Origin: Macrostomum hystrix
Taxonomy: Eukaryota; Animalia; Platyhelminthes
Length of the DNA stretch: 64,000 nucleotides
Direction of reading: 5' to 3'
NCBI GenBank assembly: GCA_950097015.1
Contig: CATNEN010000015.1
Coordinates: 2,025,188-2,089,187, forward strand
Below are positions 2,526 through 53,641 of this stretch, in pieces. The notes beneath the pieces were generated by a model, which worked only from the letters and a program-made list of their open reading frames with translations, did not search any database and had not been told where the DNA came from. The first letter of the stretch is position 1, and each line of letters starts with the position of its first letter. The position numbers were made by a program, and so were the translations under genes.

Positions 2526-3263
2526 ATGGTCGCCGCTTCAGCTTTCAACTCCGCCGTCTACAGCGCTCTGCTGGCCGTCACCGCTGCCAGGGTGGCTCAG
2601 TTCTCCTACATCGGCTGCTTCAAGGACAACTATACAGCCACCAGAGCCTTAAATGGGCTGCAGGGAGTGAGTCGACTTGGTGAATTTTTCTACAGCGACA
2701 GGGATGGCCTGCAGAGTGACAGCGGGATGTCAACCGGGTTCTGCGGCAACGTCTGCTCACTGGGCGGGTTTCCGTACTTCGGCATGCAGTACGGCAGGCA
2801 GTGCTACTGCGGCCTGTCCTACTGGCTCTACGGAGCTGCCACCGAGACTGAGTGCGACATGGCCTGCTGGGGAAACCCGGCACAAAAATGCGGGGGAGGA
2901 AACCGGATTTCCGTGTTTTCCCAGACCTATCCGGGTGAGGCGAACTACCTGCTCTATGATCGTTTAGTTTCTGGTCAAACGAATAATTAAATTGTACAAT
3001 TTCGGACAACCACTCTGTATCATTTAGAACAAAACTCTTTCGTGCTGAAAGCCATGCCCTCTCTGAAGGTCGTGACAAGTCAAACTACTTTCTTGACCAG
3101 CTCTGCCGCGAACATAATGGAATGTGCGGCTGTGTGCTGGGTTAGCTCTGACTGTCAAGCCCTGATCTTCTCTGAGCGGCTGCTCCTGTGCCACCTGCTC
3201 AGGTTCGCCTACCCACCTGCCAACCTGACTGGAATCATTGGAGACTACTACCTGCGTGGCTAA
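2526..3263 (+). CDS. W1: secreted WSC + PAN/apple-like protein, 2 exons (2526-2934, 3028-3263), intact
   Basis: Hydrophobic N-terminus. WSC signature YIGCF..D / M...FC...C...GFPYFG.QY...CYCG / C.M.C.G....CGG. GT donor at 2935 (phase 1) and AG acceptor at 3026-3027 join in frame. Ends GDYYLRG-TAA. Confidence 0.88.
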
Positions 3264-4480
3264 GACTACTACCTGTGTGGCTGAGACTACTACCTGTGTG
3301 GCTGAGACTACTACCTGCGTGGATGAGACTACTACTTGTGTGGCTGAGACTACTACCTGCGTTGATGAGACTACTACCTGCGTGGCTGAGACTACTACCT
3401 GTGTGGCTGAGACTACTACCTGTGTGGATGAGACTACTACCTGTGTGGCTGAGACTACTACCTGCGTTGATGAGACTACTACCTGCGTGGCTGAGACTAC
3501 TACCTGTGTGGCTGAGACTACTACCTGTGTGGCTGAGACTACTACCTGTGTGGCTGAGACTACTACCTGTGTGGCTGAGACTACTACCTGTGTGGCTGAG
3601 ACTACTACCTGTGTGGCTGAGACTACTACCTGCGTGGCTGAGACTACTACCTGTGTGGCTGAGACTACTACCTGCGTGGCTGAGACTACTACCTGCGTGG
3701 CTGAGACTACTACCTGCGTGGCTAAGACTACTACCTGCGTGGCTGAGACTACTACCTGGGTGGCTGAGACTACTACCTGAGGATGAGACTACTACCTGTG
3801 TGGCTGAGACTACTACCTGTGTGGCTGAGACTACTACCTGTGTGGCTGAGACTACTACCTGTGTGGCTGAGACTACTATCTGTGTGGCTGAGACTACTAC
3901 CTGCGTGGCTGAGACTACTACCTGCGTGGCTGAGACTACTACCTGCGTGGCTGAGACTACTACCTGAGGATGAGACTACTACCTGTGTGGCTGAGACTAC
4001 TACCTGTGTGGCTGAGACTACTACCTGTGTGGCTGAGACTACTACCTGTGTGGCTGAGACTACTACCTGCGTGGCTGAGACTACTACCTGCGTGGCTGAG
4101 ACTACTACCTGCGTGGCTGAGACTACTACCTGCGTGGCTGAGACTACTACCTGTGTGGCTGAGACTACTACCTGCGTGGCTGAGACTACTACCTGCGTGG
4201 CTGAGACTACTACCTGTGTGGCTGAGACTACTACCTGCGTGGCTGAGACTACTACCTGCGTGGCTGAGACTACTTACCTGCGTGGCTGAGACTACTACCT
4301 GTGTGGCTGAGACTACTACCTGTGTGGCTGAGACTACTACCTGTGTGGCTGAGACTACTACCTGTGTGGCTGAGACTACTACCTGTGTGGCTGAGACTAC
4401 TACCTGTGTGGCTGAGACTACTACCTGTGTGGCTGAGACTACTCACTGCGTGGATGAGACTACTACCTTCTTGAATGAAA
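3241..4480 (+). repeat. 21-bp stop-codon minisatellite after W1 (GAGACTACTACCTG[T/C]GTGGCT), ~58 units
   Basis: First unit is the last 6 codons + stop of W1. Occasional 20/22-bp slipped units shift the frame. Confidence 0.95.
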
Positions 4481-5520
4481 CTACTATGAAACTGCTGCCA
4501 GCCGTAGTTCTGAGCCACATCTCTGAAATGATCACGCTTAAAGTGCATTAACTAATTGTTTCTGCAAATTTTTTTATTAAAGAGATTAGACTCATCCGCT
4601 TTTACCTGTGGGAAGCGCTTAGCAATAATATGTGTAAATGTATTTCCTTGGATGGTCATAAGAACTATCAGGAAAGTGCAACTGTCAAGTACCAGTCTGC
4701 AGGCGAACTCTAAAGTAGTACTTTCTGTTCTCTGTTCCACTGTTCGCCAGCTGTTTTACTTTCTTTTGTTCTCGAGAAAATGCAGATGGCCAACAACATG
4801 TGATTTTCCGACGGATACTGATGTATTGTTCCCAAAACATCAATCAAATTTTATTCTTTACACAAGAAGACAGATTCTAGAAGTGGTTGGGATTCTAGAC
4901 GAATCTTTCTTTTAGAAGACAGAAAGATGAGTTGACCCAACAGGGAAGCAGGGAGTGACATGCACGCTGGCTTTTCTTGAATAATTAAAGCGGCTTGAAA
5001 TTATTTGCCTTTTTCACGGCCAGTTTTAATAAAAGTGCATACCTTGTGCCTGCTCACGATGCTTTTTTCAACAAAAAAGACGGGGAAAAAAGAAATGCAA
5101 ACGCCACACCTGCTCCTTAGAAACAGGTCAGGTAACCGTCTATTTACGTTTTCCGCTTTGGAGAGTCAGCACTATTATTTTATTTCATTAGCAGATTAGC
5201 TAGCGGAGTCAGTTTAAGACAGGATATATCATGGATTTCACACGAACTCAAAATAATCCCAATTGATTTCGTTTGAAACACAGAACCTCGGACCGTGGCG
5301 ATTGTAGCAAAAATGCAGACAGCCTAAAATATGGGTGTTATATTCATGCCTACTTATAAACACAATTCCTTAACAAACATGACTACTCGCTTAATAGTAT
5401 TTCTCGAGCAGACGCGCCAAAAAACAATAAACACGCAATGCAATGACACTGCCTTCTGAGCTGTTTCTTATTGAGAATGATGTGTCATCCAATTTTCGAA
5501 CTGAAAGGACATATGATCAA

Positions 5521-6196
5521 ATAGACAGGTGAGCTGAAGAGACAGGTGAGCTGGAGAGACAGGTGAGCTGGAGAGACAGGTGAGCTGGAGAGACAGGTGA
5601 GCTGGAGAGACAGGTGAGCTGGAGAGACAGGTGAGCTGGAGAAACAGGTGAGCTGAAGAGACAGCTGAGCTAAAGGACAGGTGAGCTGGAGAGACAGTGA
5701 GCTGAAGGGACAGGTGAGCTGAAGGGTCAGGTGAGCTGAAGGGACAGGTGAGCTGAAGGGACAGGTGAGCTGAAGGGACAGGTGAGCTGAAGGGACAGGT
5801 GAGCTGAAGGGACAGGTGAGCTAAATGGAAAGGTGAGCTGAAGGGACAGGTGAGCTGAAGGGACAGGTGAGCTGAATGGAAAGGTGAGCTGAAGAGACAG
5901 GTGAGCTGAAGGGACAGGTGAGCTGAAGAGACAGGTGAGCTGGAGAGACAGGTGAGCTGAAGAGACAGGTGAGCTGGAGAGACAGGTGAGCTGGAGAGAC
6001 AGGTGAGCTGAAGGACAGGTGAGCTGGAGAGACAGGTGAGCTGAAGAGACAGGTGAGCTGGAGAGACAGGTGAGCTGGAGAGACAGGTGAGCTGAAGGAC
6101 AGGTGAGCTGGAGAGACAGGTGAGCTGAAGAGACAGGTGAGCTGAAGAGACAGGTGAGCTGGAGAGACAGGTGAGCTGGAGAGACAGGTGAGCTGA
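5521..6196. repeat. 17-bp satellite (GACAGGTGAGCTG[A/G]AGA), left part of an array split by a transposon
   Basis: ~40 units. Resumes at 10080 after the inserted element. Confidence 0.95.
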
Positions 6197-10079: not shown

Positions 10080-10206
10080 GAAGGACAGGTGAGCTGGAGA
10101 GACAGGTGAGCTGAAGGACAGGTGAGCTGGAGAGACAGGTGAGCTGGAGAGACAGGTGAGCTGAAGAGACAGCTGAGCAGAAGGACAGGTGAGCTGAAGG
10201 GCAGGT
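10080..10206. repeat. 17-bp satellite, right part of the array split by the CACTA-like element
   Basis: Same unit and phase as 5521-6196. Confidence 0.9.
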
Positions 10207-11495
10207 GTGGGTTTGATTTTAATATGGCTTTATTATTATTATTTTAATTTTGTTATGTCTTTGCATTATCAAGTGTTCTTGAACATGCCGGCTACCGCAT
10301 CCAGAAATCATAGATTCCTCTTTTAGCAGCTTAGCATAACGCCAGTTCATTTTCGTGGATTCAGAACTGTGTTTGTCTTATTGCTACTCGTCTCGAAAAC
10401 TCGCATACAGCTGGCTTCTATTGTGATCCCGGATATCTAATGCGGTTTCACGGGCTCGCATGCAGCCAAATAAAATGTTTCTTGAAAGAAAATGATAGGT
10501 TTTTTATTATTTCAGGCTTCAGCCAAGTTTTGTAATCAGTTATTATTGTGCTGGTGCTTTCTGACAAGCAGGAAAGTGCTTCTAAACCGATAAAATATTC
10601 GCGTGTTTCGTTAGTCCATTAAGGCATTCTGCCTAAATGCCTTAATGTTAGTCCTAATGGGCGGAACTGCATTCCATTCTTTGGCAGAAAAACATTTATC
10701 GTTTAGCGAGGCGTTCCGCATTTTCGCTTTTGTAGCCCCCTTAAATACGGACTTAAATACTCAGTTTGACAAAATACATTCAGCCGCATGTATGTGCCTC
10801 GGGACTTGTGCGATACCTTATTTATGAGAAGTCAGAAGGGTTCCTGCCCTGCGAGACGGTGTGGATGTGCGGATGTGAGCGTGCATGTGTGCTCAGAGGT
10901 TATCTTGGAAAGTCTCTTGTGTGTGGCTGGTTTGTGTGCTTTTTGTTAGGCCTTCCTCACCCACCCCCGTCCTGGCTCAGAGTGCCCGGTGCCGCCATCT
11001 GATTGGCTGGGCGCGGGCATTGTGTGTCTATCCTACCCCAGCCCTGCGTGGCTTTGCCCTCACGCCAATCAGCTCTGCGTAGCTTTGCCCGTCCACCCAT
11101 CCAGCGCGTACAACCCTACCCCCCCAACGCGCTGTAGGCTTTGTTTGTGCTCCGCCCCTGTCTGCCCCCTTGTCGGCCCTAGTGGTATCGTTTTCTGCCC
11201 GGGCCAAGGGTACCACTCGCCCCCCTCGCGAACTTTAAAAGATCGTGCCGTAAAGACGGTCTCTTACGGCGAAGGCTCAATTCCTTGCATGCGAAGTGTT
11301 TATTGACTACATTTATTTATTGTAGTGATTGCGAGCGTATGGTTTATTGAAGTGCAAACATTGACGACAAATACATTCAGCGTCATCCTGCCATCCTATC
11401 GTGCGTCCCGACCGGTAAGCGCTGTATTCGTGTCTGTCCTTTCGGAGTGCCAGGCCCGCACGGAGTACTGTAATAGTCTTAGAAGTACTGTGTGA

Positions 11496-12417: not shown

Positions 12418-12577
12418 AGGTGGTAGTCTGTCTCAGCCACACAGGTAGTAGTCATAGCCACACGTAGTAGTCTCAGCCACACAGGTAGTAGTCTCAGCCA
12501 CACAGATAGTAGTCTCAGCCACACAGATAGTAGTCTCAGCTTCACAGGTAGTATAGTCTCAGCCACGCAGGTAGTAA
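12418..12577 (-). repeat. 21-bp stop-codon minisatellite downstream of W2, ~7 degenerate units
   Basis: Reverse complement of GAGACTACTACCTGTGTGGCT. Confidence 0.9.
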
Positions 12578-12598
12578 TCTAACTGTAATCTATGTAAT

Positions 12599-13328
12599 CT
12601 AACCTTCTACCTGCGATTTCGAGCCTCGCAGGTAGAAATCGCCAGCAACGCCAGTTAGGGTAGACGGCGGGTAGGCGAACCTGAGCAGGTAGCACTGACT
12701 TCGAATCTTTAAGGAGATCACAGCCTGACAGTCAGCGCTGGCATGGCACTGAGCCACGCACTTGATCTTCAATGTCACAGCGCTTGTCCAGAATGTGGTA
12801 TAAGTGGCCACCACAGTCAGGCTTGGCGTTTGGGTCCGGGTGAAGATGTTCCTACCTGCAAATCAAGTTTTTAAGGCTAAGTCACGGCTCCTAGAACTCT
12901 ACGAACTCCACGAATTCCTAGAACTACCTACCCGGGTAGGTTTGGGCGAACACGGAGTTCCGGTCGCTTCCTCCACAGATCTGTGACGAGTTTCCTGAGC
13001 AGGCCATGTTGCACTCGGACTCACTGGCTGCTCCGTAAAGCCAGAAGGACTTGCCACAAAAGCACTCACGGCTGTTCTGCACACCGAAGTACGTGAATCC
13101 GCCAAGTGAGCAGACATTGCTGCAGAAATCATGCGACATGGTGTTGCTGCGCACGCCTTCTTTGTTGTAAGCGAATTCACCAAGTGTGCTCACTCCATCC
13201 AGCCCGTTCAAGGCTCTGACGCTACGCCAATCATCCTTGAAGCAGCCGACGTAGGAGAACTGAGCCACCCTGGCAGCAGCGACAGCCAGCAGAGCGCAGC
13301 AGACAGCGGAGGCCAAAGCGCTGATCAT
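12599..13328 (-). CDS. W2: secreted WSC + PAN-like protein, 2 exons (13328-12932, 12855-12599), intact, chimeric
   Basis: ATG at 13328. GT donor at 12931 (phase 1), CAG acceptor at 12858-12856, in frame. Ends GDFYLRGSKSQVEG* because the canonical stop is mutated. Confidence 0.88.
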
Positions 13329-13702
13329 TATCGCCAATTACGAAGCTAACTATGAAGATAATATTTAACCGTTGCTGTTTTAGCCTTCTTAAGTAACATA
13401 CAACCTGAGCATAATCTCGCCGGACTTCTGTTTTACCTAAAGTAATATGTAAAATGCGATTTGCTGTCCAATTTATCACAATGGACTGGCCGAACCAATC
13501 AGAAAGCAGAACCTGCTTAAGGGGTGCTGACTTGTTTTAATACACCTAAATAGTCTATAAATTTCCTCAAAACTGCCAAATTATTTAAAAAAATAACTTT
13601 AAAAAAAATAATCTGAATAGTTGGCTCTAGGTATTCAAGTTCAATTCGGGTGTGCATGGACATTTCATAAAATTGATGTACGACAAAACTCAAGAGATGC
13701 AT

Positions 13703-13793
13703 GAGCTGAAGAGACAGGTGAGCTGAAAGGACAGGTGAGCTGAAGTGACAGGTGAGCTGAAGTGACAGGTGAGCTGAAGGGACAGGTGAGTTT
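13703..13793. repeat. 17-bp satellite island upstream of W2
   Basis: GAGCTGAAG[A/T/G]GACAGGT units. Marks the end of W2/W8 upstream homology. Confidence 0.9.
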
Positions 13794-13809
13794 TAGATAG
13801 ATAGACAGG

Positions 13810-19367: not shown

Positions 19368-19830
19368 TGGGCTGCTTCTCGCCTGTGGGCGCACTTTCGC
19401 CAACTGCCTTCTTCCTGCGTTCTTCCTGCTTTTGCCGCCGCTTCAGACATTAATGGGTGGGTAAAGCAGCTCGCGGCTTTACCCGTTTTTAATGTCAGAG
19501 CGCGCGGCCCTCCTCTCTCTCTGCCCTCTCTCCGCCGCCTACCGCCCACCCCCTTTTGCGTGTTCATCTGTGCTCGTACATTTCCGAGACTGCACATTTT
19601 AAGTCCCGGGGCTGCGCCCCAATATATGTCGCCCCGTGTTGAGAAGCGAGGATCGCTGTCGCTGTCTCAAAAATAAAATTTTTCTTTCAGTTTTATCTGC
19701 TGCTTTAATTAAAATAAACTCGCGCTAACAGCCACATCGCTCATGGGCTGCTTCTCGCCTGTGGGCGCACTTTCGCCAACTGCCTTCTTCCTGCGTTCTT
19801 CCTGCTTTTGCCGCCGCTTCAGACATTAAT
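19368..19830 (+). repeat. 3' terminal repeats B1-A2-(~60-bp spacer)-B2 of the YR element
   Basis: B1 19368-19454, A2 19451-19683, B2 19744-19830. Confidence 0.93.
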
Positions 19831-20054
19831 CTAACTATTCTACCATTATTAACAATTATTTTTGAAATAGTTGATTACTCATCTCAGCCTATGAGTATCT
19901 TTCAGCAGCCTATTTTACGTGACAGAAACCAATAGCTACTTATTTTTTATTGGACCAGGCAGATAATACAATAACCGATGGGATGACTTGCTCTCGCTTA
20001 TTAGCGATGAAACCATTGTAAAATCGTTCTGGCTCTTCGTTATTAGCGACTGTG

Positions 20055-35533: not shown

Positions 35534-35878
35534 CCACAGATTCTATATCACAGGTAATATAGAATCTGTGCTACTACCTGCTTCGAGTCACCATTGTGAA
35601 ATGAGCATGCTTAAAGTGCATTCACAAATTGCGTCTGAAACTTTAATTTAATCAGTTAGACGAGACTCATACCTATTTACCTTGCGTAAAACGCTAAGCG
35701 TCATCAATACTCTAAAGCAGTACTTTCTGTTCTCTGCTCCACTGTTCGTCAGCAGTTTTACTTTGCTACGTTCTCGAGAAAAGTCAGATGGCCAACAATC
35801 AGCCAGTAATTGACAGGTACAATAATTCATTGCTCCTAAAACATCAATAAATTTTCATTTATTTGCATAAGCCTGCAT

Positions 35879-36943: not shown

Positions 36944-37533
36944 AGACAGGTGAGCTGAAGGGACACGTGAGCTGAAGGGACAGGTGAGCTGAAGGGACAG
37001 GTGAGCTGAAGGGACAGGTGAGCTGAAGGGACAGGTGAGCTGAAGGGACAGGTGAGCTTAAGGGACAGGTGAGCTGAAGGGACAGGTGAGCTGAAGGGAC
37101 ACGTGAGCTGAAGGGACAGGTGAGCTGAAGTGACAGGTGAGCTGAAGGGACACGTGAGCTGAAGGGACAGGTGAGCTGAAGTGACAGGTGAGCTGAAGGG
37201 ACACGTGAGCTGAAGGGACAGGTGAGCTTAAGGGACACGTGAGCTGAAGGGACAGGTGAGCTGAAGGGACAGGTTAGCTGAAGGGACAGGTGAGCAGATT
37301 GGACAGGTGAGCTGAAGGGACAGGTGAGCTGAAGGGACAGGTGAGTAGATTGGACAGGTGAGCTGAAGGGACAGGTGAGCTGAAGGGACAGGTGAGCAGA
37401 TTGGACAGGCGAGCTGAAGGGACAGGTGAGCTGAAGGGACAGGTGAGTAGATTGGACAGGTGAGCTGAAGGGACAGGTGAGCTGAAGGGACAGGTGAGCA
37501 GATTGGACAGGCGAGCTGAAGGGACAGCTGAGC
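36944..37533. repeat. 17-bp satellite (GACAGGTGAGCTGAAGG), ~35 units
   Basis: Same family as 5521-6196. Confidence 0.95.
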
Positions 37534-38243
37534 TTTTTTAATTTTTTAGAGTTGATTGTTAGGCATTTCAGATTACATTTAGTTTTGCGACACGTTTTTC
37601 TCTTGTTTTCTTTCCTAAATCCAAATTTGGTTTTCCTGACATGGTGACTCCCACATGCAGAATCCACAGATGCTATTTTATACCCCAAATATGACGGCTG
37701 TGTTAAATCAAAAGCCTGCACTTCGAGGCAGTTATTTAGCTGTGTTGTCATTCCGGTGGACGCAGAACTGTGGTTTTTCTATTCTTGTTCGCTTCAATTG
37801 TTACTGGAGTTTTTGCTGCAGTGTTACGGTCTTGCTAGCAGGTACAATTAAGATTCCATTTTAAGAGAGTGATTGAAATCATTTTAACAAATGTAAATGT
37901 CGCTACCAGCATATTGGTTGTTTTTTATTCAACCCTTTCTTTCGAGGCTGCTTCTTGTTGGATTGTGGTTTCTTGAGCAGTATTCTGAGTTCTGAGTCCT
38001 TGCTCGAGAAAAAGAGCTTGGAAAAAGATCTGTTTCCATGGAAATATGAAAATATTGCTGGTCCAAAGCACTGGGCCTAAATTCACTACAGCTAGCCAGG
38101 CACTGCAGCCTTCTGATTAGGTGAGACTGCTCACGGGATGAGGAGTGCAGTGTCCACTGCAGTAAGAATTGCAGCGTCAAGAAGAACTCTAGTTAAAACG
38201 ATTGCCTTCTGGACTGCTGGCCAGTGAAGAAGAGCTTCCTGAA

Positions 38244-38996
38244 ATGATGATCAGAGTTCTGCTTGCCACCATCTGCTGCCTGACCATCGCAGCTGCCAGG
38301 GTCGCTCAGTTCTCCTACATCGGCTGCTTCATCGATAACTCCTCAAGCGTCAGAGATCTGAACGGGCTGCACGGGGTGAGCAGGCTCGGTGAATTCGCTC
38401 ACAGCGACAGCGCCGGAGTGTACAGCAGCATGACGCGCGAGCTCTGCAGCAAAATCTGCTCTCTTGGCGGCTTTCCGTACTTCGGTCTACAATACAGCTA
38501 TCAGTGCTTTTGCGGCCTGTCCTATGGGCTCTATGGAGCGGCGAGTGAGTCCGATTGCAACTGGGCCTGCTCGGGAAAATCAACACAGAAGTGCGGAAGC
38601 AGCGCCCGTAATTCCGTGTTCGCTCAGACCTATCCAGGTGAGCTGAATCTCAAGCAATACAATGCTTCACTTTGTATTATTCCGTGAGCTGATACTCGTA
38701 CATATGAATGCACGATCCTTGGTGTAACAAGGAAAACTGATTCTATAAATTGCTTTTTAGATAGATCCATCTTCTCATGGACCATGTTGCCCAGCCTGAC
38801 TGTTGAGGCGACGCACGCCACCTTCTGGACTAGAAATGCGACATCCAGGATCGAGTGTGCGACCGAGTGCCATGCCCGAGCCACCTGTCAGGCTGTGATC
38901 TTCTCTAAGACTCAACTGCACTGTTATCTTCTCAGGTTTGCCTACCCGCCTGCCAGCCTGAGCGGCATTCCCGGAGACTACTACCTGCGAGGCTGA
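38244..38996 (+). CDS. W5: secreted WSC + PAN-like protein, 2 exons (38244-38637, 38761-38996), intact
   Basis: GT donor at 38638 (phase 1), TTTTTAG acceptor ending 38760, in frame. Ends GDYYLRG-TGA. Confidence 0.9.
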
Positions 38997-39285
38997 GACT
39001 ACTACCTGCGAGGCTGAGACTACTACCTGCGAGGCTGAGACTACTACCTGCGAGGCTGAGACTACTACCTGCGAGGCTGAGACTACTACCTGTGTGCCTG
39101 AGACTACTACCTGTGTGGCTGAGACTACTACCTGTGTGGCTGGACTGCTACCTGTGTGGCTGAGACTACTACCTGTGTGGCTGAGACTAATACTTGTGTG
39201 GCTGAGACTACTACCTGTGTGGCTGAGACTACTACCTGTGTGGCTGAGACTAATACTTGTGTGGCTGAGACTATTACCTAAGACT
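38974..39285 (+). repeat. 21-bp stop-codon minisatellite after W5, ~15 units
   Basis: The first five units carry the gene's own CGA-GGC-TGA variant; later units carry TGT-GGC-TGA. Confidence 0.95.
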
Positions 39286-40740
39286 TAAGCTTAGAAAGAT
39301 CTACGTCACTCCTACGTTGACTCTGATTCATAATTTGAAACAAACAAAGAGGCTAGTCATGTGTGAAGAAGCGAGTCACAGTGTAAATTAATTTTCCGCT
39401 TAAATTCGATTCTTCTATATTTATAAAAACTAAATCACGACCTGAAGGTAATTAGACTTCTTATACGTACTTTAACGAAGCACCATTTTTCTCGATTTTG
39501 CACAGCAGAAGTTTGAAATTTTCAATCGTACAAATTAAAGGTATCGTTTATTATAGAAGTTAATTTTTTTTTGTGTAATTTCTTGTAATCAATATCCCTA
39601 TGGAAGTTTATATTAAGGTTTTTTTCCATGTTCGTGGTTTTGTCTCGCGCACACATTGTTACAAGTAGTAAGCGCTGCGCACATCAATGCATCTGCCTGT
39701 TATTTTGTTTAGCCATTAGCAGGAAAACAGATGTGGGAAAAGCTCGACGGGAAAAAAATCATAGTCCCGTTGGTCTTCCGTTCTATGCTTCTAGGTTCTC
39801 ACGATAGTGCGTTGGCAGTGCATGATTAAAAAGTCAGTAATGCTGATACGAGTGTTTCTGGAAATCAAATTCAAGCGTTTGGTGTTTGTGGTGAAGGAGC
39901 TGTGAGTTTTTGGTACCCTTGATGTTCTCATTTTTGAAGAGGAAATTAAAACTGGGACTGAAATCACTTCTCTCACGAAAGGAGAAAAGCTGTTGTGTTT
40001 CTGTGAGTTACGATCAAATGTAAGAAAACAAAAACACAAACTATAATCAAGCATTCTAACTATGGGCCTCAGGGCAGTGGCCTTTTTACCTAGCTTTAAG
40101 CATGCTTTCTATGAAGTCCACAAAACTTTCTGTTAATTCTGTGCTTTCCTGTGTCATTAACAGTTGAACTACCAATCGGGGGGAATTCCCCCCCCTGACA
40201 ATTCTTTTGCTGCACCCGAACGGAACAATGCAAGCACACGAAACTCAAGAACACGGGCCAACTTTTTGTTGCGCATCTTCTGAAACAAGAAACAAGTCGC
40301 CAGCTCTTCAGGCCGTCGAGATATTCAATGTTTCTGGCCGAAGGTCCGATTTTTCCCATAAGAGCTAGTGTATTTCATACACCCCTATACACGAATTTGC
40401 ACTGCGCCTCAGTGCGGCCTTTCCAGACCTTCAAACTTTATCAGCATGTCACCCGAATGTGCTTGCATCATCACCGACCTTTATCTAGATCTATCTCTCT
40501 TATCTATCTAGACCTTCAAGAGCTACAACAGGTGGAACTAGGCCACTATGGACACCCTGACGCGAATTTCTCCAATTTCACTGTTCAAGCCTAACTATTA
40601 GGCGCAGCTCAACCACAGGACACCCTCGACTGGTCTGTCAACCTTTTCAAATGGTTGTTTTTAAAAAAATTCCCCCCTTGGTATAAAAACGGGCGGCAAA
40701 ACGGCTTGGTAGTCCTACTGTTAAATACACAGTTTTATCA

Positions 40741-41110
40741 TCAGCTGTTAGGCTTTCGAAATTTCGAACCTGCCACTTTCTCTATGAATTTATTTTTAAT
40801 TGGAACATAAACGGACCAATTGCATCCAAAGAGAATAGGAGTTTCGTTCTCTACCTCGACTCTACATTTTGGACATGTTCTGTTCTCATAGGCGATCTTC
40901 GGTCTTACAGTGCGCAATGTCTCACAGGCCAGTTTGTGGTTTCCTAGAAGAAATCGGGACATTGTGCGCCTTAAAACTAAAAAACTCCATTGCACAAACG
41001 CATGCCAGACTAGTAGCTGATATTTTCAGAACCAGCGGTAGTAAACACAATCCAATGGGAACTAAAAACAGTTCTAGAACTTTCGCTCCCCATATTTGCC
41101 GAGCTTCTTT
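40741..41110 (-). mobile_element. Degenerate 3' end of a LINE ORF2 (C-terminal Cys/His region)
   Basis: RRTMSRFLLGNHKLACETLR...ENRTCPKCRVEVENETPILFGC resembles the R...HxL.IE.GR / R.C..C...EDE.H..F.C motif of CR1/L2-group LINEs. Confidence 0.7.
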
Positions 41111-41518
41111 GTAGACCTGCGGCGCACTAATAGGGCTGCCGCTACATTAGCCGCTCAATGAAATCGCATTTCTAAGCAAACAGACCACGCGGGGAAATGA
41201 AACTCTATTTAGCCTGAACCAGAGTAGCTAATTGATGTGATGTGAGGCAGCGGGAATGTGAAGTCTTTAATGGATACTGGAGGACTCACGTGGGGCCTTC
41301 ACGTGAGCACACTAAACCTATTCCAGACTTTTTTGAATGCAGTAAATAATTTGTGGATTTTATTTTGAAAAGTACCAGAGAAGCATAAGAAGAATTTATT
41401 TGCTCATATTACCACAATAAGAACTAAATTATAACAAACCTTACAAATTGAATGACAAATGAATTTTTAATCGCAGTCTGTCACTTCAGTAAATTTTTAT
41501 CGGCACCTCGCCTGTCGA

Positions 41519-41677
41519 AAGTCTTTGTCATTGTCAAAATGGTAGCCTCGAGGGTAGTAAGTCTTGGTCATTGTCAAAATGGTAGCCTCAAAGGTAGTAA
41601 GTCTTGGTAATTGTCAAAATGGTAGCCTCGAAGGTAGTAAGTCTTGGTCATTGTCAAAATGGTAGCCTCGAAGGTAG
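41519..41677 (-). repeat. 40-bp minisatellite after W6, 4 copies, embedding a diverged copy of the terminal 21-mer
   Basis: Minus-strand unit contains GACTTACTACCTTCGAGGCTA plus 19 nt of extra sequence. Confidence 0.85.
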
Positions 41678-41695
41678 GTCGTAGTTACGCTGGTC

Positions 41696-42432
41696 TTAGC
41701 CACGTAGGTAGCCTCGCAGGTAATAGTCTCCTGTAAACCGAGTCAAGCTAGCTTGCGAGTAGACAAACCTGAGCAGGTAGCACAGCTGCTGCTGCTCAGA
41801 GAAAATTGCAGCCTGGCAGATGGGGCTGGCCTCGCAAAGGATGAGGCACTGAGAAGCGGCATTCGCAGCCAAGGTCCAGTGCGTGGTCTCGGCAGCTTCC
41901 ACTGTTAGGGTGAGTCTCGGAGATTTCGTGAAAAACGCTTTGTCTAAATGGATTGAAAAGGATGTGAGACATCGCGAGTCGCGAGACAGCTGAGGAAAGC
42001 AGAGACTTCAGAGAGCTAGCTAGTGTGCAACTTACCTGCATAGGTCAGCCTGAACACTGAGTTCCGGTTGACTGAACCGCAGATCTGACTCGAGTTCCCG
42101 CTGCAAACCATGTTGCATTCACTCGCATGGGCCACTCCCTGGGACCCGAATGACTGGCCGCAATAGCACTCAGAGCTGAACTGTACACCAAAGTAGGCGA
42201 ATCCACCGAGCGAGCACGCATTGCTGCAGAACTCGTGAGACATGCGGTTGCTTAGCAACCCGGAGCCCACCAGTGAAGTTCCACCGACTGAGCTGATTCC
42301 AATGAGCCCGTTTAAATCTCTAACACCAGCTGTGTTGTCGACGTAGCAGCCGATGCGCGAGAACTGAGCCACACGGGCAGCCGCGAGGGCTAGGAGAGCG
42401 CAGCAGACAGCAAAGAGCAGGCTCGTGCTCAT
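41696..42432 (-). CDS. W6: secreted WSC + PAN-like protein, 2 exons (42432-42036, 41943-41696), intact
   Basis: GTAAG donor at 42035 (phase 1), TTTAG acceptor at 41946-41944, in frame. Ends GDYYLRGYLRG-TAA. Confidence 0.9.
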
Positions 42433-44244
42433 GTTGCTGAATTATAAATAATACCGACCTGCCTGTGTGATGATTCTTATTGACAACCTTTTTGTCGTTT
42501 GCGATCCCTGAGGCGGCAATGCAAGCAGGGGACGGTTACACTGGGCGGCGCATGAATTGTTCTCAGAAGTCCAATTAGAACTCAATATTATCCAGTGCGA
42601 GCGCGCGCCGCAAGTAGCATTCAGCTCCCATTGGTCAATCCTTTGCAATGAGATTTGAAAGTCAACACTGTCTATTGGCCATTAGATATCGTCTTTATTC
42701 TAATATTTGGAACTGTAATTGTGGTCCGATGGACATTTCTTTGAGAAATTCGAAGGCCGGCCGAAGGTTAAAGTGCAATTCCCTGACTGAAATATTCAGT
42801 GCCGATTCAATCAGTAAAATTGCTTGTCAAACGGGGGGGTAAAAAGCTCATAAGTTTTTTAACTTTTCAGACTACCCACGTACATTTTGAACTTTTATGT
42901 ATCTCCAAAAATATTCAATCTATCGTCATGAAAATCCAGAACACGGTCTAACATTAGAGCTCTTTCCGATGAATCACAAGGTCAGCATCGTTGAGATACT
43001 TATCGATTGTGGTCAAAGACGCCGGTGACAAGGACAACAAAGACTGCCGGTGACAAGGACAACAAAGACGCCTTGCGAAGAGCGCGGCGTCGGTCTCGCT
43101 GCCTGGGCCGCTGCGCACTCCGCAAGCCGCACGAAACGGGCGGCTCCCACCGCCTCCTCGCTGCATCCGCTCGGGCCGGTGCACCCTGAAGCTAAGTCAA
43201 GTAAGTCCAGTCTCTGGGGGACGGGGGAAGTGGCTCGGCGTTGGCGATGAGTCGAACGAAGACGTGGAGCTCGCGGATCCAAGTGCTCAACTCGTCGATC
43301 CCTTGGAGGTGAATGAGATGTCGTCTGCACTCTTTCTCAAAAAAGCTGGCAGAATGTGCCGTGGACTTCCGCGTTTTCCTCACCTAGGCCGCACCCAGTT
43401 TGGAGGGCCATCAATGGATGACCAGATCTACAAATCCTGAGGAACTCTAAGGAACCCAGAGCTCAGTTCCAAATCCAGGTGACGCTGGAGCCTCCTGCGT
43501 CCCTGTCAGTTCCGCCGGGTGGCGCCAGGGACCGCTAGAACGCAACACGGAAGCTAGGTGAACCGGAGCAGGTGGGACGGCAGCTGCTGCTCAGAGAAGA
43601 TCGAACTGGACAATGCAGCCAAACCGATTTCCGACAGCGCTAGTCCACAATGGCATCAATCATAACCAGAATTGAATCAATCATCAAAATGATGACGTAA
43701 ATAAGACGAAGGGAGGGATAAATATAGGTCATCCAGAATGCTCTCAGCCCTCAGTACCTACCATGATACTACCATAGCTACAGAGAGCCGTCTTGGCCCA
43801 GACTCTGAGCGATGGAGCCTTCTTTCGAGCTTTTGAGTCCGTGCCAGGCTTAGCTCACTGGGCTCAGCTCACAATGGTAATTATTACCCATCAGGTGTGA
43901 CAGCCAGCATTTCACCATCCCTGGTCCCGGCTGAGGCAGCTTAACTTGAAGGCTGCTAATAGTGGCTAGAAACTGAAATCAAAACTGACCATCATTTTCC
44001 ATGCTTTTCCATTTTGAATTCTTTACTCGTACCAAGTTGAGGACTTGAAAATTTCAATGACTTTTGCTGCACACTAATTATCGTCAACACTTCACATGAT
44101 ATACTCGTAGAATTGAATCAAAGTAACTCAGTGGACTGATATGAGCTTGCATTTTTATTTAACATCATAGAATGTACTTCATGCTTTTCCTTAATAATCT
44201 CACATAGTTATTTATGTCAGACACGGGCACACAGGTACACAGTC

Positions 44245-44962
44245 TCAGCCACGCAGGTAGTAGTCTCCAGGTGTACTGCTCAGGTTGGCGGGTGGGTAGG
44301 CGAACCTGAGCAGGTGGCACAGCTGCTGCTGCTGAGAGAAGATCACAGCCTGGCAGTCGGAGCTGGGCTGGCACTGGACCAGGCAGCCCAGTCTGCTTGT
44401 GGAGGCGCTGGCCCACACAATGGCGTTGCTAGCGACAACGGTTTTAGTAGGCCGGGATGACTTCGAGAAGCAGTTGTTTTCTGTAAGGAGAATTCAAAAC
44501 AATCTTTACAACTGCAGCTCAAGTTGAAGCATGGGACCATACAAGTCAGAGCACAACCCACTGGGGTAGGTGAGAGCAAACACCGAGTTACGGAGGCCAC
44601 CGCCACAAACTTGGCTTGCATCTCCGTTGCAGCTCGTGCTGCAGTTGCCTTCGCTGACTGCTCCCAGCGATCCGTAGGCTCTGCCGCAGAAGCACTGGTT
44701 ACCCCGCCTGCACCCCGAAGTACGGGAAGCCGCCGAGACTGCAGAGGCCCGCGCAGAACTGGGGCGTCATGCTTCCAGTTCTGATGCCGAGGCTGGAAAC
44801 GGAAAAACCACCAAGTTTTACAACAGCAGTGAGCCCGTCCAAGTCTCTGTTACTGTCCTTGTCCTTGTAGCAGCCGATGTAGGAGACCTGGAACAGCCGG
44901 CCAGACACGCAGGCCAGGACGGCACACGCAGCCAGCAGTGTGTGAGTCAGGCGTAAGCTCAT
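44245..44962 (-). pseudogene. W7: WSC + PAN-like gene (44962-44562, 44480-44245) with a +1 frameshift in exon 1; exon 2 intact
   Basis: GGGTAACCAGTGC versus GGGTTCCAGTGC in the near-identical W9 creates a TAA at 44701-44699. Exon 2 ends GDYYLRG-TGA with only ~1 extra degenerate unit. Confidence 0.78.
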
Positions 44963-45642
44963 TGTTTAGTGACTACTTCAGCCGTCAGGAAAGGAGAGCA
45001 ATGACCTTCGTCAGGCCTTAGAGAGCCCATTAAAGATGCCAAAGCCTGAAACCGACTTTGTAATATATACTCAACTGCTCACAACCAATAAGCCCATGCA
45101 AGCCCCATGTCTTTTCCAAAGCGTCTTCAGCACTTGAAGGCTGCCCGCAGAAGCCATTGTCAAACAATGACACTTCTGGACTCCTGAAGCTAATCTTCCT
45201 TCCTAAAGACATCAACGAAGCCAACTTCTAATTGTTTCTTAACTCTCTCTCCTAGTCACTTGGTGAGGCCTGTGTGATGCCTTTGTCATTTGTGAAAAAA
45301 AACAATAAATCTGCTGTGCACCTTTTAATGAGCCCACTTTACCAGGGGACAAAAAATGAGTTTGCCTGCTGACAGTTTCCAAGAAAGTCTTTCTTCACAT
45401 TTTCCAGCAGGGCTAATGAGAACTGCTTTGCTGTGTCACTTGGATGGGTATCTATAAAATCAAACGAACCAACTTACACCTGATTACTGAACTGCGAACT
45501 AAGCATACAATACTACTAATTAATCTGGCTAGACGTGCTCTCAAGGTCTCTTAAGTATCTTAGTGTTTTGAATGGTGTTCTCATTTGATCTCATCTCATC
45601 GAGAGACTCATCTGTATGTCACAATCCTCCAAGACTTCTGAG

Positions 45643-45755
45643 TGGCTGAGACTACTACCTTGTGTGGCTGAGACTACTACGTGTGTGGCTGAGACTACTA
45701 CCTGTGTGACTTCTAGCTCGTACCTGCATGGCTGAGACTATACCTATGTGGTTGA
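45643..45755 (+). repeat. Orphan degenerate 21-bp minisatellite (~4-5 units) with no adjacent PAN exon
   Basis: GGCTGAGACTACTACC.TGTGT units. Upstream sequence shows no exon 2 homology. Confidence 0.85.
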
Positions 45756-46252
45756 CACAGCGAAAAGAACGTTCAGGTTTAGATGGTGCTGATAGCAGTA
45801 GTAGGCACGCTTATTCAAGAAAGTGAATGTCATTCTAAGCCTCTTCTTGTGACAAATTGCTGTGAAGCAAAAACTGAAGACGCTGTTCTATTCAATTTTT
45901 TACCCTACTTTGAATGCCCTGTTGCGATCTAGTCAAGCAGTCTTGTGGCATCTCTGAACTGAGCTGTGTAGGGAGCTGTTTTAAACTTTGTCCTCGGGAC
46001 AACTTTCGTTGATTATTTCCCATCCATGTCACTCTACAAAGCCACCCAGCAGGGGGGCTATTCCTTGCGATTAGCAGTCTCCTTCACAAGTCAAAATGTT
46101 TGGGCAGTGCATCCACTCAAAGGTTTGGATGCAGTGACACTCCTAACAATGCTCAAATCTTCCCTGCTGCAATTTACGGAGCTTCCGTTTGTCAAAATCT
46201 GAATAAAAACTACCGCTGACCCGTACCAGGAATATTCTAGTCAGCCCGATTC

Positions 46253-46461
46253 AGCTCACCTGTCCCTTAAGCAAACCTGTCCCTTCAGCTCATCTGTCAG
46301 TTCAGCTCATCTGTCCTTTCAGCTCACCTGTCACTTCAGCTCACCTGTCCCTTAAGCTCACCTGTCCCTTCAGCTCACCTGTCCCTTGAGCTCACCTGTC
46401 CCTTAAGCTAACCTGTCCCTTAAGCTCAGCTGTCCTTTCAGCTCACCTGTCACTTCAGCTC
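46253..46461. repeat. 17-bp satellite island in reverse orientation, upstream of W8
   Basis: CTTCAGCTCACCTGTCC units. Confidence 0.9.
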
Positions 46462-46861
46462 ATGCATCTCTTGAGTTTTGTCGTACATCAATTTTCTGAA
46501 ATGTCCATGCACACCCGAATTGAACTTAAATACCTCGAGCCAACTATTCAGATTCCAAAAGTTTTTTTTTTTAATAATTTGGCAGTTTTGAGGAAATTTA
46601 CAGACTATTTAGGTGTATTAAAACAACAGTCAGCACCCCTTATGCTTCACAATTAGCTCAGAAGGCTTCGCAAGCAGGTTCTGCTTTCTGATTGGTTCGG
46701 CCAGTCCATTGTGATAAATTGGACAGCAAATCGCATTTTACATGTTACTTTAGGTAAAACAGAAGTCCGGCGAGATTATGCTCAGGTTGTATGTTACTTA
46801 AGAAGGCTAAAACAGCAACGGTTAAATATTATCTCCATAGTTAGCTTCGTAATTGGCGATA

Positions 46862-47956
46862 ATGATCAGCGCTTTGGCCTCCGCCGTCTGCTGCGCTCTG
46901 CTGGCTGTCGCTGCTGCCAGGGTGGCTCAGTTCTCCTACGTCGGCTGCTTCAAGGATGATTGGCGTAGCGTCAGAGCCTTGAACGGGCTGGATGGAGTGA
47001 GCACACTTGGTGAATTCGCTTGCGACAGACAAGGCGTGCGCAGCAACACCATGTCGCACGAGCTCTGCAGCAATGTCTGCTCACTTGGCGGATTTCCGTA
47101 CTTCGGAGTGCAGTTCAGCCGTGAGTGCTTTTGCGGCAAGTCCTACTGGCTCTACGGAGCTGCCAATGCGTCCGACTGCAACATGGCCTGCTCGGGGAAC
47201 TCATCACAGATCTGTGGAGCAAGCAACCGGAACTCCGTGTTCGCCCAGACCTACCTGGGTGAGAATGAACTACATGCCAAAGACTAAGGGTTTTTAAGAC
47301 CATAAGATCAGCAAGAATTGAGTCGTGAAAAACGCTTGTAGGCCCAGTTCTTGAAGGCCCAAGTGATTTGGCAGCGAGAATTGCAGTCTCTAAGGCTTAG
47401 GGTCGATATATTTATTGGTTAACGATAGCGGAGGATGGGTGTGTTGTATGAGCACGTTCGATGCTGCAAGTTGCAAGCGGATACCCTACAAATACCCTAC
47501 AAATACCCTACAAATACCCTACAAATCAATGGTGGGCACGAGCGTAGCTCTTAATTAAGCTGAAGTGAATAATGAAGCACAAGAGATGCATAGCCAGCTA
47601 TGCCGCTAAAATTTCTATTGTGAAACTGCCCAAATACCGAAAAATACTCGTTCTAGAAATTCAAGGATTTCTAACTCTTTTAAGAGGAGCAGATACATAG
47701 CGCTAAAACTTGAATTACAGGAAGGAACACTTTTACCAGGACCCAAACGCCAAGCCTGACTGTGGTGGCCACAAGTACCACATTCTGGACAAGAGCTGTG
47801 ACTTTGAATATCGAGTGTGTGGCCCAGTGCCAAACCGACGCTGACTGTCAGGCTGTGATTTTCTCTGAGCAGCAGGGACAGTGCTACCTGCTCAGGTTCG
47901 CCTACCCACCACCTAGCCTAACTGGCATTGCTGGAGACTACTACCTGTGTGGCTGA
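46862..47956 (+). CDS. W8: secreted WSC + PAN-like protein, 2 exons (46862-47258, 47721-47956), intact
   Basis: ATG at 46862. GTGAG donor at 47259 (phase 1), TTACAG acceptor ending 47720, in frame. Ends GDYYLCG-TGA. Confidence 0.9.
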
Positions 47957-48941
47957 GACTACTACCTGTGTGGCTGAGACTACTACCTGTGTGGCTGAGA
48001 CTACTATCTGTGTGGCTGAGACTACTACCTGTGTGGCTGAGACTACTACCTGTGTGGCTGAGACTACTACCTGTGTGGCTGAGACTACTATCTGTGTGGC
48101 TGAGACTACTACCTGTGTGGCTGAGACTACTACCTTGTGTGGCTGAGACTACTACCTGTGTGGCTGAGACTACTACCTGTGTGGCTGAGACTACTACCTG
48201 TGTGGCTGAGACTATACTACCTGTGTGGCTGAGACTACTACCTGTGTGACTGAGACTGCTACCTGTGTGGCTGAGACTACTATCTGTGTGGCTGAGACTA
48301 CTAGCTGTGTGGCTGAGACTACTACCTGTGTGGCTGAGACTACTATATGTGTGACTGAGACTACTATCTGTGTGGCTGAGACTACTAGCTGTGTGGCTGA
48401 GACTACTACCTGTGGGGCTGAGACTACTACCTGTGTGGCTGAGACTACTACCTGTGTGGCTGAGACTACTACCTGTGTGGTCGAGACTACTACCTGTGTG
48501 GCTGAGACTACTACCTGTGTGGCTGAGACTACTACCTGTGTGGCTGAGACTACTACCTGTGTGGCTGAGACTACTACCTGTGTGGCTGAGACTACTACCT
48601 GTGTGGCTGAGACTACTACCTGTGTGGCTGAGACTACTACCTGTGTGGCTGAGACTACTACCTGTGTGGCTGAGACTACTACCTGTGTGGCTGAGACTAC
48701 TACCTGTGTGGTCGAGACTACTACCTGTGTGGCTGAGACTACTACCTGTGTGGCTGAGACTACTACCTGTGTGGCTGAGACTACTACCTGTGTGGCTGAG
48801 ACTACTACCTGTGTGGCTGAGACTACTACCTGTGTGGCTGAGACTACTACCTGTGTGGCTGAGACTACTACCTGTGTGGCTGAGACTACTACCTGTGTGG
48901 CTGAGACTACTACCTGTGTGGCTGAGACTAGTAACTGCGTG
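47934..48941 (+). repeat. 21-bp stop-codon minisatellite after W8, ~47 units
   Basis: Begins in the last codons of W8. Confidence 0.96.
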
Positions 48942-49539: not shown

Positions 49540-49995
49540 GACAGGGGAGAGATGACACAGGGGAGAGATGAGACAGGGGAGAGAGATAATACATGGGGAG
49601 AGAGATAAGACACTGGAGAGAGGAGACTGGGAGACATGAGACACGGGAGAGATGAGACACGGGACACATGAGACACGGGACACACGAGACACGGGACACA
49701 CGAGACACGGGACACACGAGACACGGGACACACGAGACACGGGACACATGAGACACGGGACACATGAGACACGGGACACATGAGACACGGGACACACGAG
49801 ACACGGGACACACGAGACACGTGACACACGAGACACGGGACACACGAGACACGGGACACATGAGACACGGGACACATGAGACACGGGACACATGAGACAC
49901 GGGACACATGAGACACGGGACACATGAGACACGGGACACATGAGACACGGGACACATGAGACACGGGACACATGAGACACGGGAGAGATAAGACA
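49540..49995. repeat. 16-bp minisatellite (GAGACACGGGACACA[T/C]) with a degenerate left end
   Basis: ~25 units. Replaces the distal intron and exon 2 position of W9. Confidence 0.92.
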
Positions 49996-50046
49996 ACTGC
50001 AGCTCAAGTTGAAGCATGGGACCATACAAGACAGAGCGCAACCCAC

Positions 50047-50446
50047 TGGGGTAGGTGAGAGCGAACACCGAGTTACGGAGGCCACCGCCACAAACTTGGC
50101 TCGCATCTCCGTTGCAGCTCGTGCTGCAGTTGCCTTCGCTGACTGCTCCCAGCGATCCGTAGGCTCTGCCGCAGAAGCACTGGAACCCCGCCTGCACCCC
50201 GAAGTACGGGAAGCCGCCGAGACTGCAGAGGCCCGCGCAGAACTGGGGCGTCATGCTTCCAGTTCTGATGCCGAGGCTGGAAACGGAAAAACCACCAACT
50301 TTTACAACAGCAGTGAGCCCGTCCAAGTCTCTGTTACTGCCCTTGTCCTTGTAGCAGCCGATGTAGGAGACCTGGAACAGCCGGCCAGCCACGCAGGTCA
50401 TGACGGCACACGCAGCCAGCAGTGTGTGAGTCAGGCGTAAGCTCAT
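50047..50446 (-). pseudogene. W9: intact signal + WSC exon (near-identical to W7) whose own PAN exon is missing
   Basis: Phase-1 donor GTGGGT at 50046. W7 homology stops ~50 nt into the intron, at the 16-bp repeat. No exon 2 between 49000 and 50000. Confidence 0.75.
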
Positions 50447-50758: not shown

Positions 50759-51107
50759 GCCAGGGTGGCTCAGTTCTCGTACACCGGCTGCTTCAATGAC
50801 GATTTTCTAAGCGTCAGAGCCTTGAACGGGCTGCAGGGAGTGACTAAACTTGGGGAATTCACTTACAGCGACGCGCAAGGTGTGTTCAGCAACACCAGCA
50901 TGTCGCACGAGCTCTGCAGCAATGTCTGCTCACTTGGCGGATTCCCGTACTTCGGTGTGCATTGCAGCCGTGAGTGCTTTTGTGGCAAGTCCTTCTGGCT
51001 TTACGGAGCGGCCAGTGAGTCCGAGTGCAACATGGCCTGCTCAGGAAACTCGTCACAGATCTGTGGAGGAAGCAGCTGGAGCTCCGTGTTCGCCCAGACC
51101 TACCCGG
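50759..51107 (+). pseudogene. W10: WSC exon lacking start codon/signal peptide, phase-1 donor and PAN exon
   Basis: Homology starts at ARVAQFS (50759), directly after the W9 upstream segment. Donor region reads CCGGTTAGG instead of CCGGGTAGG. It is followed by a ~190-bp hairpin-rich insert and then the 21-bp array. Confidence 0.8.
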
Positions 51108-51304
51108 TTAGGGGGGTGCTATCACAAGCTCGAAATTTCACAACACCGAAAAGCAATTTTTTCACAAGGTCGAAACTTCACAACGTCGAAAACTTAAATA
51201 GCAACTACCTTCATAGCAGCTATGAAATCTCTTGCTAAAGCTCTCAACGTTGGGAAGTTTCGACCTAGTGAAAGTAGCTGCTATTTTAGTTTTCGATGAC
51301 TAAA

Positions 51305-51540
51305 CTGAGACTACTACCTGTGTGGCTGAGACTACTACCTGGGTGGCTGAGACTACTACCTGTGTGGCTGAGACTACTACCTGGGTGGCTGAGACTACTA
51401 CCTGTGTGGCTGAGACTACTACCTGCGTGCCTGAGACTACTACCTGTGTGGCTGAGACTACTACCTGCGTGCCTGAGACTACTACCTGTGTGGCTGAGAC
51501 TACTACCTGTGTGGCTGAGACTACTACCTGGGTGGCTGAC
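51305..51540 (+). repeat. 21-bp minisatellite after W10, ~11 units, retained although exon 2 is gone
   Basis: GAGACTACTACCTG[T/G/C]GTG[G/C]CT units. Confidence 0.93.
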
Positions 51541-52704: not shown

Positions 52705-53413
52705 ATGAGAGCTTTGGTCTCCGCTGTCTGCTGCGCTCTGCTGGCCGTCGCGGCTGCCAGGGTGGCTCTGTTCTCTTACATCGGCTGCTTCATGGACGAC
52801 TATCATCGCGTCAGGGCCTTAAACGGGCTGGATGGAGTGAGCAATCTTGGTGGATTCACTTACACCCACGGTTACGGCGTGCGCAGCAACAAAATGTCGC
52901 ATGATTTCTGCAACAATGTCTGCTCACTTGGCGGATTCCCGTACTTCGGTGTGCAGAACAGCCGTGAGTGCTTTTGTGGCAAGTCCTTCTGGCTTTACGG
53001 AGCAGCCAGTGAGTCCGAGTGCAACATGGCCTGCTCAGGAAACTCGTCACAGATCTGTGGAGGAAGCGACCGGAACTCCGTGTTCGCCCAAACCTACCCG
53101 GGTAGGTAGTTCTAGGAATTCGTGGAGTTCGTAGAGTTCTAGGAGCCGTGACTTAGCCTTAAAAACTTGATTTGCAGGTAGGAACATCTTCACCCGGACC
53201 CAAACGCCAAGCCTGACTGTGGTGGCCACTTATACCACATTCTGGACAAGCGCTGTGACATTGAAGATCAAGTGCGTGGCTCAGTGCCATGCCAGCGCTG
53301 ACTGTCAGGCTGTGATCTCCTCAAAGATTCGAAGTCAGTGCTACCTGCTCAGGTTCGCCTACCCACCGTCTATCCTAACTGGCGTTGCTGGCGATTTCTA
53401 CCTGCGAGGCTAG
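52705..53413 (+). CDS. W11: secreted WSC + PAN-like protein, 2 exons (52705-53101, 53178-53413), intact
   Basis: GT donor at 53102 (phase 1), TTTGCAG acceptor ending 53177, in frame. Ends GDFYLRG-TAG. Confidence 0.9.
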
Positions 53414-53453
53414 AAATCGGAGGTAGAAGGTTAGATTACCTAGATTACAGTTA

Positions 53454-53641
53454 GATTACTACCTGCGTGGCTGAGACTACTACCTGCGTGGCTGAGACTA
53501 TACTACCTGTGGGGCTGAGACTACTACCTGTGTGGCTGAGACTACTACCTGGGTGGCTGAGACTACTACCTGCGTGGCTGAGACTATACTACCTGTGGGG
53601 CTGAGACTACTACCTGTGTGGCTGAGACAGACTACTACCTG
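53454..53641 (+). repeat. 21-bp minisatellite after W11, ~9 units
   Basis: Starts ~40 nt after the stop. Homologous to 12418-12577. Confidence 0.92.

Follow-up and report, generated by a model that had tools for sequence, protein, structure and literature searches.

A 21-bp minisatellite, probably derived from the coding end of its own genes, in a WSC-PAN gene cluster of Macrostomum hystrix

We analysed a stretch of 64,000 nucleotides from the flatworm Macrostomum hystrix (assembly GCA_950097015.1, contig CATNEN010000015.1, positions 2,025,188 to 2,089,187 of the forward strand), and the whole of this stretch is called the window below. It holds a cluster of small genes, W1 to W11, whose predicted products join a WSC domain to a PAN-like domain. 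Behind most of these genes stand head-to-tail arrays of a 21-bp unit which reads as the last six codons of the gene plus its stop codon. In this report, we describe the genes and their arrays, ask where the repeat came from, and weigh whether the arrays do anything.

Genes and arrays in the window

A tblastn search with the two exons of W1 recovered 12 copies of exon 1, which carries the WSC domain, and 9 copies of the PAN-like exon 2, distributed over both strands. The Pfam WSC profile scored 57 bits (cutoff 27.8), while PAN_1 reached 25.8 bits on W3 (cutoff 21.4) and 18.9 bits, below the cutoff, on W1. Six members (W1, W3, W5, W6, W8 and W11) are intact, each with two exons and a phase-1 intron, and in the window copies exon 2 always ends in G-[D/N]-[Y/F]-Y-L-[R/C]-G-stop. 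Together, WSC in exon 1, a PAN-like exon 2, the phase-1 intron and the C-terminal G-[D/E]-[Y/F]-[Y/F]-x-R-G mark these genes as one WSC-PAN family. The genes and remnants are as follows.

2526-3263, plus strand: W1; exon 1 at 2526-2934 (WSC, signal peptide by eye), exon 2 at 3028-3263 (PAN-like); ends GDYYLRG-TAA.
12599-13328, minus strand: W2; stop TAG changed to TCG, 3' part a near copy of W11.
20055-20858, plus strand: W3; ends GDYYLCG-TGA, coding unit identical to the array consensus.
22555-23407, plus strand: W4; likely pseudogene, without an in-phase splice acceptor and with no RNA seen.
38244-38996, plus strand: W5; intact, ends GDYYLRG-TGA with CGA as the Arg codon.
41696-42432, minus strand: W6; outside the array clade, with an in-frame 12-bp duplication, ends YLRGYLRG-stop.
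44221-44962, minus strand: W7; pseudogene with a frameshift in exon 1 and one decayed extra unit after the stop.
46862-47956, plus strand: W8; intact, ends GDYYLCG-TGA, coding unit identical to the array consensus.
49629-50446, minus strand: W9; exon 1 only (95% copy of the 5' part of W7), running into a 16-bp x 23 array.
50759-51539, plus strand: W10; remnant whose exon 1 donor is TT in place of GT, with unrelated sequence in place of exon 2 and the array kept.
52705-53413, plus strand: W11; intact, ends GDFYLRG-TAG.

The loss of the W2 stop (12599-12622) extends its frame by seven codons into the spacer before its array. In W9, the 16-bp array (49629-49995) stands in place of exon 2, and 14 of 15 bases match the sequence just after the W7 stop.

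Array positions were taken from Tandem Repeats Finder (TRF), which placed ten arrays with a period of 21 bp in the 3.2-53.6 kb part of the window, with 5.6 to ~578 units and 75-96% matches. The unit encodes D-Y-Y-L-(R/C)-G-stop, and its identity to the terminal six codons plus stop was seen at five genes; in the gene frame, the arrays translate as (DYYL[C/R]G*)n. The array starts inside the terminal codons in W1, W3, W4, W5 and W8, so that the coding end is itself unit 1, and a spacer of ~40 nt separates stop and array in W2 and W11. With head-to-tail units in the ~10-100 bp range and several to hundreds of copies, these arrays are minisatellites. Copy number differs between paralogous loci, intact genes being followed by 7 to 58 units. 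The window holds 159 matches to the 21-mer (at most 3 substitutions), every one of them in an array or at a gene end, and shuffled sequence gave 0 matches. By eye, the 21-mer contains no good match to a splice donor. The arrays at and around the genes are listed here.

3241-4468, plus strand: W1 array; 58.6 units, CGT and TGT units mixed, starting within the terminal codons.
12422-12580, minus strand: W2 array; 7.5 units, ~40 nt beyond the original stop position.
20836-21349, plus strand: W3 array; 23.6 units, with RNA contigs matching stretches within it.
23387-35534 (TRF 23405-35534), plus strand: W4 array; 578 units in perfect 21-nt register, 29 unit types.
38974-39279, plus strand: W5 array; 14.6 units, the first five CGA (the gene's own variant), the rest TGT.
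41519-41677, minus strand: W6 array of another period, 40 bp x 4; its unit is a 21-mer-like core (18 of 21 bases plus one gap) with 19 further bases.
45638-45755, plus strand: orphan decayed 21-bp array; 5.6 units, 75% matches, no exon 2 upstream and no gene adjoining.
47934-48941, plus strand: W8 array; 47.9 units, almost all TGT.
51305-51539, plus strand: W10 array; 11.2 units, kept behind the gene remnant.
53453-53628, plus strand: W11 array; 8.2 units, preceded by a 39-nt spacer made of short local duplications.

An earlier note on this DNA, made from the letters alone, had counted units behind the genes, placed the array starts within the codons of W1, W3, W4, W5 and W8 and after a spacer in W2 and W11, and read the unit as six codons plus stop, repeating as (DYYL[C/R]G*)n. 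Its counts agree with the TRF array sizes, and both the starts and the reading are borne out at the gene ends. The arrays that it listed are all present; it had missed the orphan at 45638-45755, the loss of exon 2 in W10, and the 12-bp duplication and 40-bp array of W6.

Origin and inheritance of the repeat

Among 5.8 billion proteins, the only close homologues were WSC proteins of Macrostomum lignano, 45-50% identical and ending GD[YF]F[LVA]RG. A profile search of 1.8 billion representatives added further full-length members of ~210 residues, those looked up being all from M. lignano, and most of these wider-family members end in a related motif (G-[D/E]-[Y/F]-[Y/F]-x-R-G-stop). Like the window genes, the M. 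lignano genes encode WSC plus PAN-like proteins of ~210 residues in two exons, with the same C-terminal heptapeptide. Unlike the window genes, their nearest M. lignano counterparts lack a 3' array, and a distant subfamily carries an array of 28-bp units. Several M. lignano WSC-domain secreted proteins are prostate or seminal-fluid candidates (PMC6953679, PMC4490696).

We fetched five M. lignano loci and inspected their gene ends for arrays. Nine ends read GGA GAC TAC/TTC TT. ... CG. GGC TGA and pass directly into unique sequence, with no array. The unit of the window arrays is thus homologous to the terminal codons of relatives that lack the repeat. Since these nine array-less ends carry both the heptapeptide and its codons, both are older than the array, and the direction is from coding end to satellite.

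The opposite order would have a free 21-bp satellite exist first and then be captured as the C-terminus of the family. Sequencing depth lends this some support: in the DNA run, words of the canonical array reach a depth of ~40,000-45,000, compared with 82-85 for single-copy sequence, which suggests ~500 genome copies of the commonest array words against ~90 exact canonical units in the window. Words of the W4-type array, for which 578 units are known in the window, have a depth of ~28,000, and calibration on them gives a few hundred canonical units genome-wide, several times the window content. The 21-mer is therefore not a major satellite, and more of its units would lie elsewhere in the genome than in the window. 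However, array-less M. lignano genes and divergent members of the family possess the heptapeptide and its codons. W7 retains the heptapeptide and has no more than one decayed extra unit, and the only units in the window away from family gene ends are those of one decayed orphan array. The array-less M. lignano genes with the same terminal codons led us to reject capture, and we regard it as extremely improbable. The earlier note had proposed the coding 3' end as a heritable seed of the minisatellite, and had named capture of a free satellite to supply the C-terminus as what would speak against this. The M. lignano homologues came out against capture; they, the single paralogue clade and the homologous flanks described next support the seed.

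In protein trees, W1-W5, W8, W10 and W11 (W2 included) form one window-only clade with 96/98 support and no M. lignano member; W6 falls outside. Every gene with a 21-bp array belongs to this single clade. W9, the 95% copy of W7 exon 1, groups with an array-less M. lignano subfamily (84/91 support). The sequence downstream of the arrays is homologous in pairs, W1 with W4, W8 with W10 and W2 with W11, and close paralogues have rare unit variants in common (TAT units, 23-nt units and GGT units). Moreover, W2 and W11 end in GAT TTC ... TAG and W1 in TAA, and their arrays consist of GAC TAC ... TGA units. Because these ends differ from the units behind them, the arrays were not seeded from the present ends of their own genes. 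For most arrays, this mismatch and the confinement of all arrays to one clade led us to reject the idea that each was seeded separately by the end of its own gene. The simplest history is one array birth followed by inheritance through tandem gene duplication.

The distant M. lignano subfamily, whose proteins end in ...EAEWVWMKL, has a different array at the same position. All four gene ends of this kind, located on two contigs, carry a 28-bp array that starts inside the last ~ten codons, and this gene-end array is new in this analysis.

L002:1722-2130, L002:13308-13446, L003:4012-4131 and L003:28365-28447: M. lignano 28-bp arrays, distant WSC-PAN subfamily.

One of the four belongs to an intact two-exon gene, in which the TGA stop straddles the joint of two units. 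The 28-mer and the 21-mer have only a 13-nt stretch in common, corresponding to the Leu-x-Gly-stop codons. A period of 28 bp is not a multiple of three, so no rule of reading frame applies. The M. lignano clusters also contain recurring intergenic minisatellites of 21 bp and 30 bp, unrelated to gene ends (L001:12455-12695, L002:12524-12641 and L003:27405-27691; L002:11841-12064 and L003:26873-26946).

Transcription, likeness between arrays and the coding unit

Evidence of transcription came from run X2, which is not labelled as RNA and holds spliced sequence; run X1 is DNA, and contigs built from short words collapse arrays. A 916-nt X2 contig contains W3 exon 1, skips 171 nt (20452-20622, GT..AG) that coincide exactly with the predicted intron, and continues into exon 2; this splice joint is absent from X1. 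Other X2 contigs match stretches within the W3 array, and one (21320-21521) joins the last 30 nt of the array to 172 nt of unique flank.

21350-21521, plus strand: unique 3' tail of the W3 transcript, covered by an RNA contig; RNA depth is zero from ~21640.

Spliced W3 RNA together with coverage beyond the array places the W3 array in the 3' untranslated region (3'UTR). Among the paralogues, W3 is the only one with such evidence, the others having no or low coverage: there is none on the W4 gene and its array, little on W5 and none on W6. The earlier suggestion that the arrays form a 3'UTR thus holds for the location of the W3 array, by the spliced contig and the RNA beyond it, and reaches no further along the cluster. 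At its other end, W3 RNA extends at least 232 nt upstream of 19900 (19668-20054, approximate), that is ~390 nt or more before the ATG, which puts the transcript start within a few hundred bases of a retrotransposon ending near 19311.

Repeats within 3'UTRs are well known, as in human SLC6A3/DAT1 with its 40-bp repeat. The window arrays resemble such variable number tandem repeats in having head-to-tail units of 10-100 bp after the stop, transcription within the 3'UTR and variable copy number. They differ in that the unit is the gene's own last six codons plus stop, with the coding end as unit 1, and in that ~ten paralogues are followed by the array, which exchanges sequence with the coding unit. 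A full-text literature search found no precedent for a repeat derived from a stop codon, its partial coverage making this weak evidence of absence.

The arrays are much more alike than their genes. Identity from array to array is 92-95%, equal to that within arrays, compared with ~75% between the exons of different genes. The canonical unit is the commonest in seven arrays, or nearly so in three short ones among them. The older paralogues differ synonymously by 0.4-0.6 in every segment (~45% of synonymous sites), and their introns no longer align. By our own estimate, two 21-nt consensus units drifting independently would agree at all sites with a chance of ~0.55^21, or ~4 in a million. Only the W4 array has drifted, at 5 of 21 positions, and its edge units are closer to the canonical unit. 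The likeness reflects either exchange of sequence between arrays or constraint on the unit, and exchange is the probable cause. Satellites and ribosomal DNA follow a general model of concerted evolution by unequal exchange, and here too units within and between arrays are more similar than the surrounding unique sequence, with edge units more divergent than central ones. The difference is that protein-level selection acts on one unit of each window array, so that exchange with its array alters the protein. In W3 and W8, the coding unit is exactly the TGT unit of the array, giving Cys where the family has Arg. The W8 coding unit differs from that of its close paralogues W2 and W11 at 6 of 21 bases, compared with ~12% across the whole last third of exon 2. 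At W5, the gene's CGA variant occupies the first five array units.

Such exchange raises the possibility that the arrays, selected or not, serve as anchors for recombination or gene conversion and drive the changes in copy number and the mosaicism of the cluster. The equality of between-array and within-array identity, the replaced coding units of W3 and W8, the chimeric, truncated and inverted copies (W2, W9 and W10), and the single orientation common to seven array-bearing genes all fit this. However, synonymous difference shows no clear fall toward the array, being 0.42 in the last third of exon 2 and 0.46 in exon 1, and a gradient of gene conversion from the array into exon 2 was not convincing on segment-wise synonymous differences. 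Exchange therefore seems limited to the repeat itself. The breakpoints that can be placed also lie outside the 21-bp arrays: the W2/W11 block ends ~320 nt past the array, the W2/W8 switch falls in exon 1, and the block common to W7 and W9 stops at the 16-bp array. On balance, we think a role as anchors rather unlikely. The earlier note had likened the cluster to the SpTransformer (Sp185/333) genes of the purple sea urchin. The comparison is apt for small two-exon genes of secreted proteins in tight tandem clusters amid tandem repeats, with signs of local genomic instability (PMC3091723, PMC5103432, PMC10887614). It is otherwise loose. Di- and trinucleotide repeats stand before and after each SpTransformer gene, and they do not stem from its coding end (PMC3091723) or take in the stop. 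SpTransformer diversity comes from mosaic elements within exon 2, and these genes have an established immune role. The 21-bp array is confined to the 3' side and, as W3 shows, belongs to the transcript.

A different proposal is that the arrays are selected 3'UTR elements, in which the unit acts as a binding site or structure and the unit number tunes messenger RNA (mRNA) stability, translation or localisation. The place of the array inside the W3 3'UTR agrees with this, as does a unit consensus kept in seven arrays despite the synonymous divergence between their genes. The array RNA also folds better than shuffled sequence (z = -3.2), but a z-score of about -3 is common among tandem repeats. 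Similarly, M. lignano has an array at the same gene position, but its 28-bp unit shares only the stretch that corresponds to the terminal codons. The unit number varies among intact genes (7 to 58) without pattern, the longest array stands behind a gene that looks dead (W4), and arrays survive behind W10, which has no exon 2, and as an orphan. A search of Rfam found no family match in or around the arrays, which also counts against a selected element. A regulatory role of the array is possible; we consider it unlikely that selection for one has shaped these repeats.

Proposed history and its implications

The account that we favour, and hold to be probable, is a near-neutral one, in which slippage at the coding end of a gene for a secreted WSC plus PAN protein gave rise to a 3'UTR minisatellite specific to this lineage. 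At birth, the ancestor of a single paralogue clade would have undergone a 21-nt tandem duplication comprising the final six codons and the stop. It would have been tolerated because translation ends in unit 1 and the later units stay untranslated. Since each unit has its own in-frame stop, the array can grow or shrink by slippage or unequal exchange with the protein unchanged. Tandem gene duplication would then have copied gene and array as one block, and the arrays would have stayed alike, presumably through exchange between them. In turn, the repeat may have acted back on the protein: the TGT unit of the array now occupies the coding position of W3 and W8 (Arg to Cys), and the CGA unit of W5 has spread into the first five units behind it. 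Finally, runaway growth may account for the 12 kb array behind W4, an apparently dead copy. No function of the array is needed to explain these steps.

Several observations weigh against this account. Word depth suggests that most units lie elsewhere in the genome, outside the window. X2 contigs break inside the repeats, so that single-molecule continuity across the whole W3 array is something we infer. Selection on the unit, and not exchange, could explain the identical consensus in seven arrays. Moreover, the 28-bp arrays of M. lignano, the 40-bp array of W6 and the 16-bp array of W9 suggest that gene ends are favoured beyond chance as sites of array birth, which is more than pure neutrality accounts for; the alternative is co-evolution of an old array and the coding end.

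Taken further, the gene 3' end would be a true hot spot for minisatellite birth, where arrays rewrite the C-terminal peptide through exchange with the coding unit and their length sets the 3'UTR length and the output of each paralogue. We judge this improbable. If it were true, the rewriting would comprise Arg to Cys in the window genes and a wholly different tail in the M. lignano subfamily, and the family affected would be one of fast-evolving, secreted, possibly reproductive proteins.

The cluster is a rare case in which the source sequence of a minisatellite can be identified. One family displays the stages from no repeat (M. lignano) through one decayed extra unit (W7) and 7-58 units (intact genes) to a 12-kb array (the dead W4). 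The rule is simple: translation does not see a tandem duplication that includes the stop codon, and the duplication is free to expand. The coding unit stays a member of the array, and exchange can overwrite it and alter the last residues of the protein. If array length affects mRNA fate, the family, with its seminal-fluid-candidate relatives, would possess a built-in and fast-mutating dial of expression.

The window is rich in other repeats. It contains ~15 other private kinds of minisatellite, and 31% of its bases lie in tandem repeats, a share that falls to 12% if the W4 array is left out; array birth is thus frequent in this genome. A second recurring satellite, of 17 bp, occurs at 5523-6196, 10080-10207, 13702-13790, 36945-37534 and 46250-46462, upstream of some genes and in either orientation. 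The only copy in the window of its 13-nt core, CAGGTGAGCTGAA, outside these arrays is at the splice-donor junction of W5 exon 1 (38635-38647); shuffled sequence gave 0 matches. This satellite may derive from the other exon boundary of the family.

Two further features lie among the genes. The segment 40134-40857 has a depth of ~300,000 in the DNA run, compared with ~80 for single-copy sequence, and also occurs in the RNA-like run, where it shows numerous deletion joints inside it. This makes it a repeat, or a mobile element, of very high abundance. Just upstream of W1, an open frame at 1483-2190 resembles, by eye, the C-terminal part of a reverse transcriptase of the long interspersed nuclear element (LINE) type.

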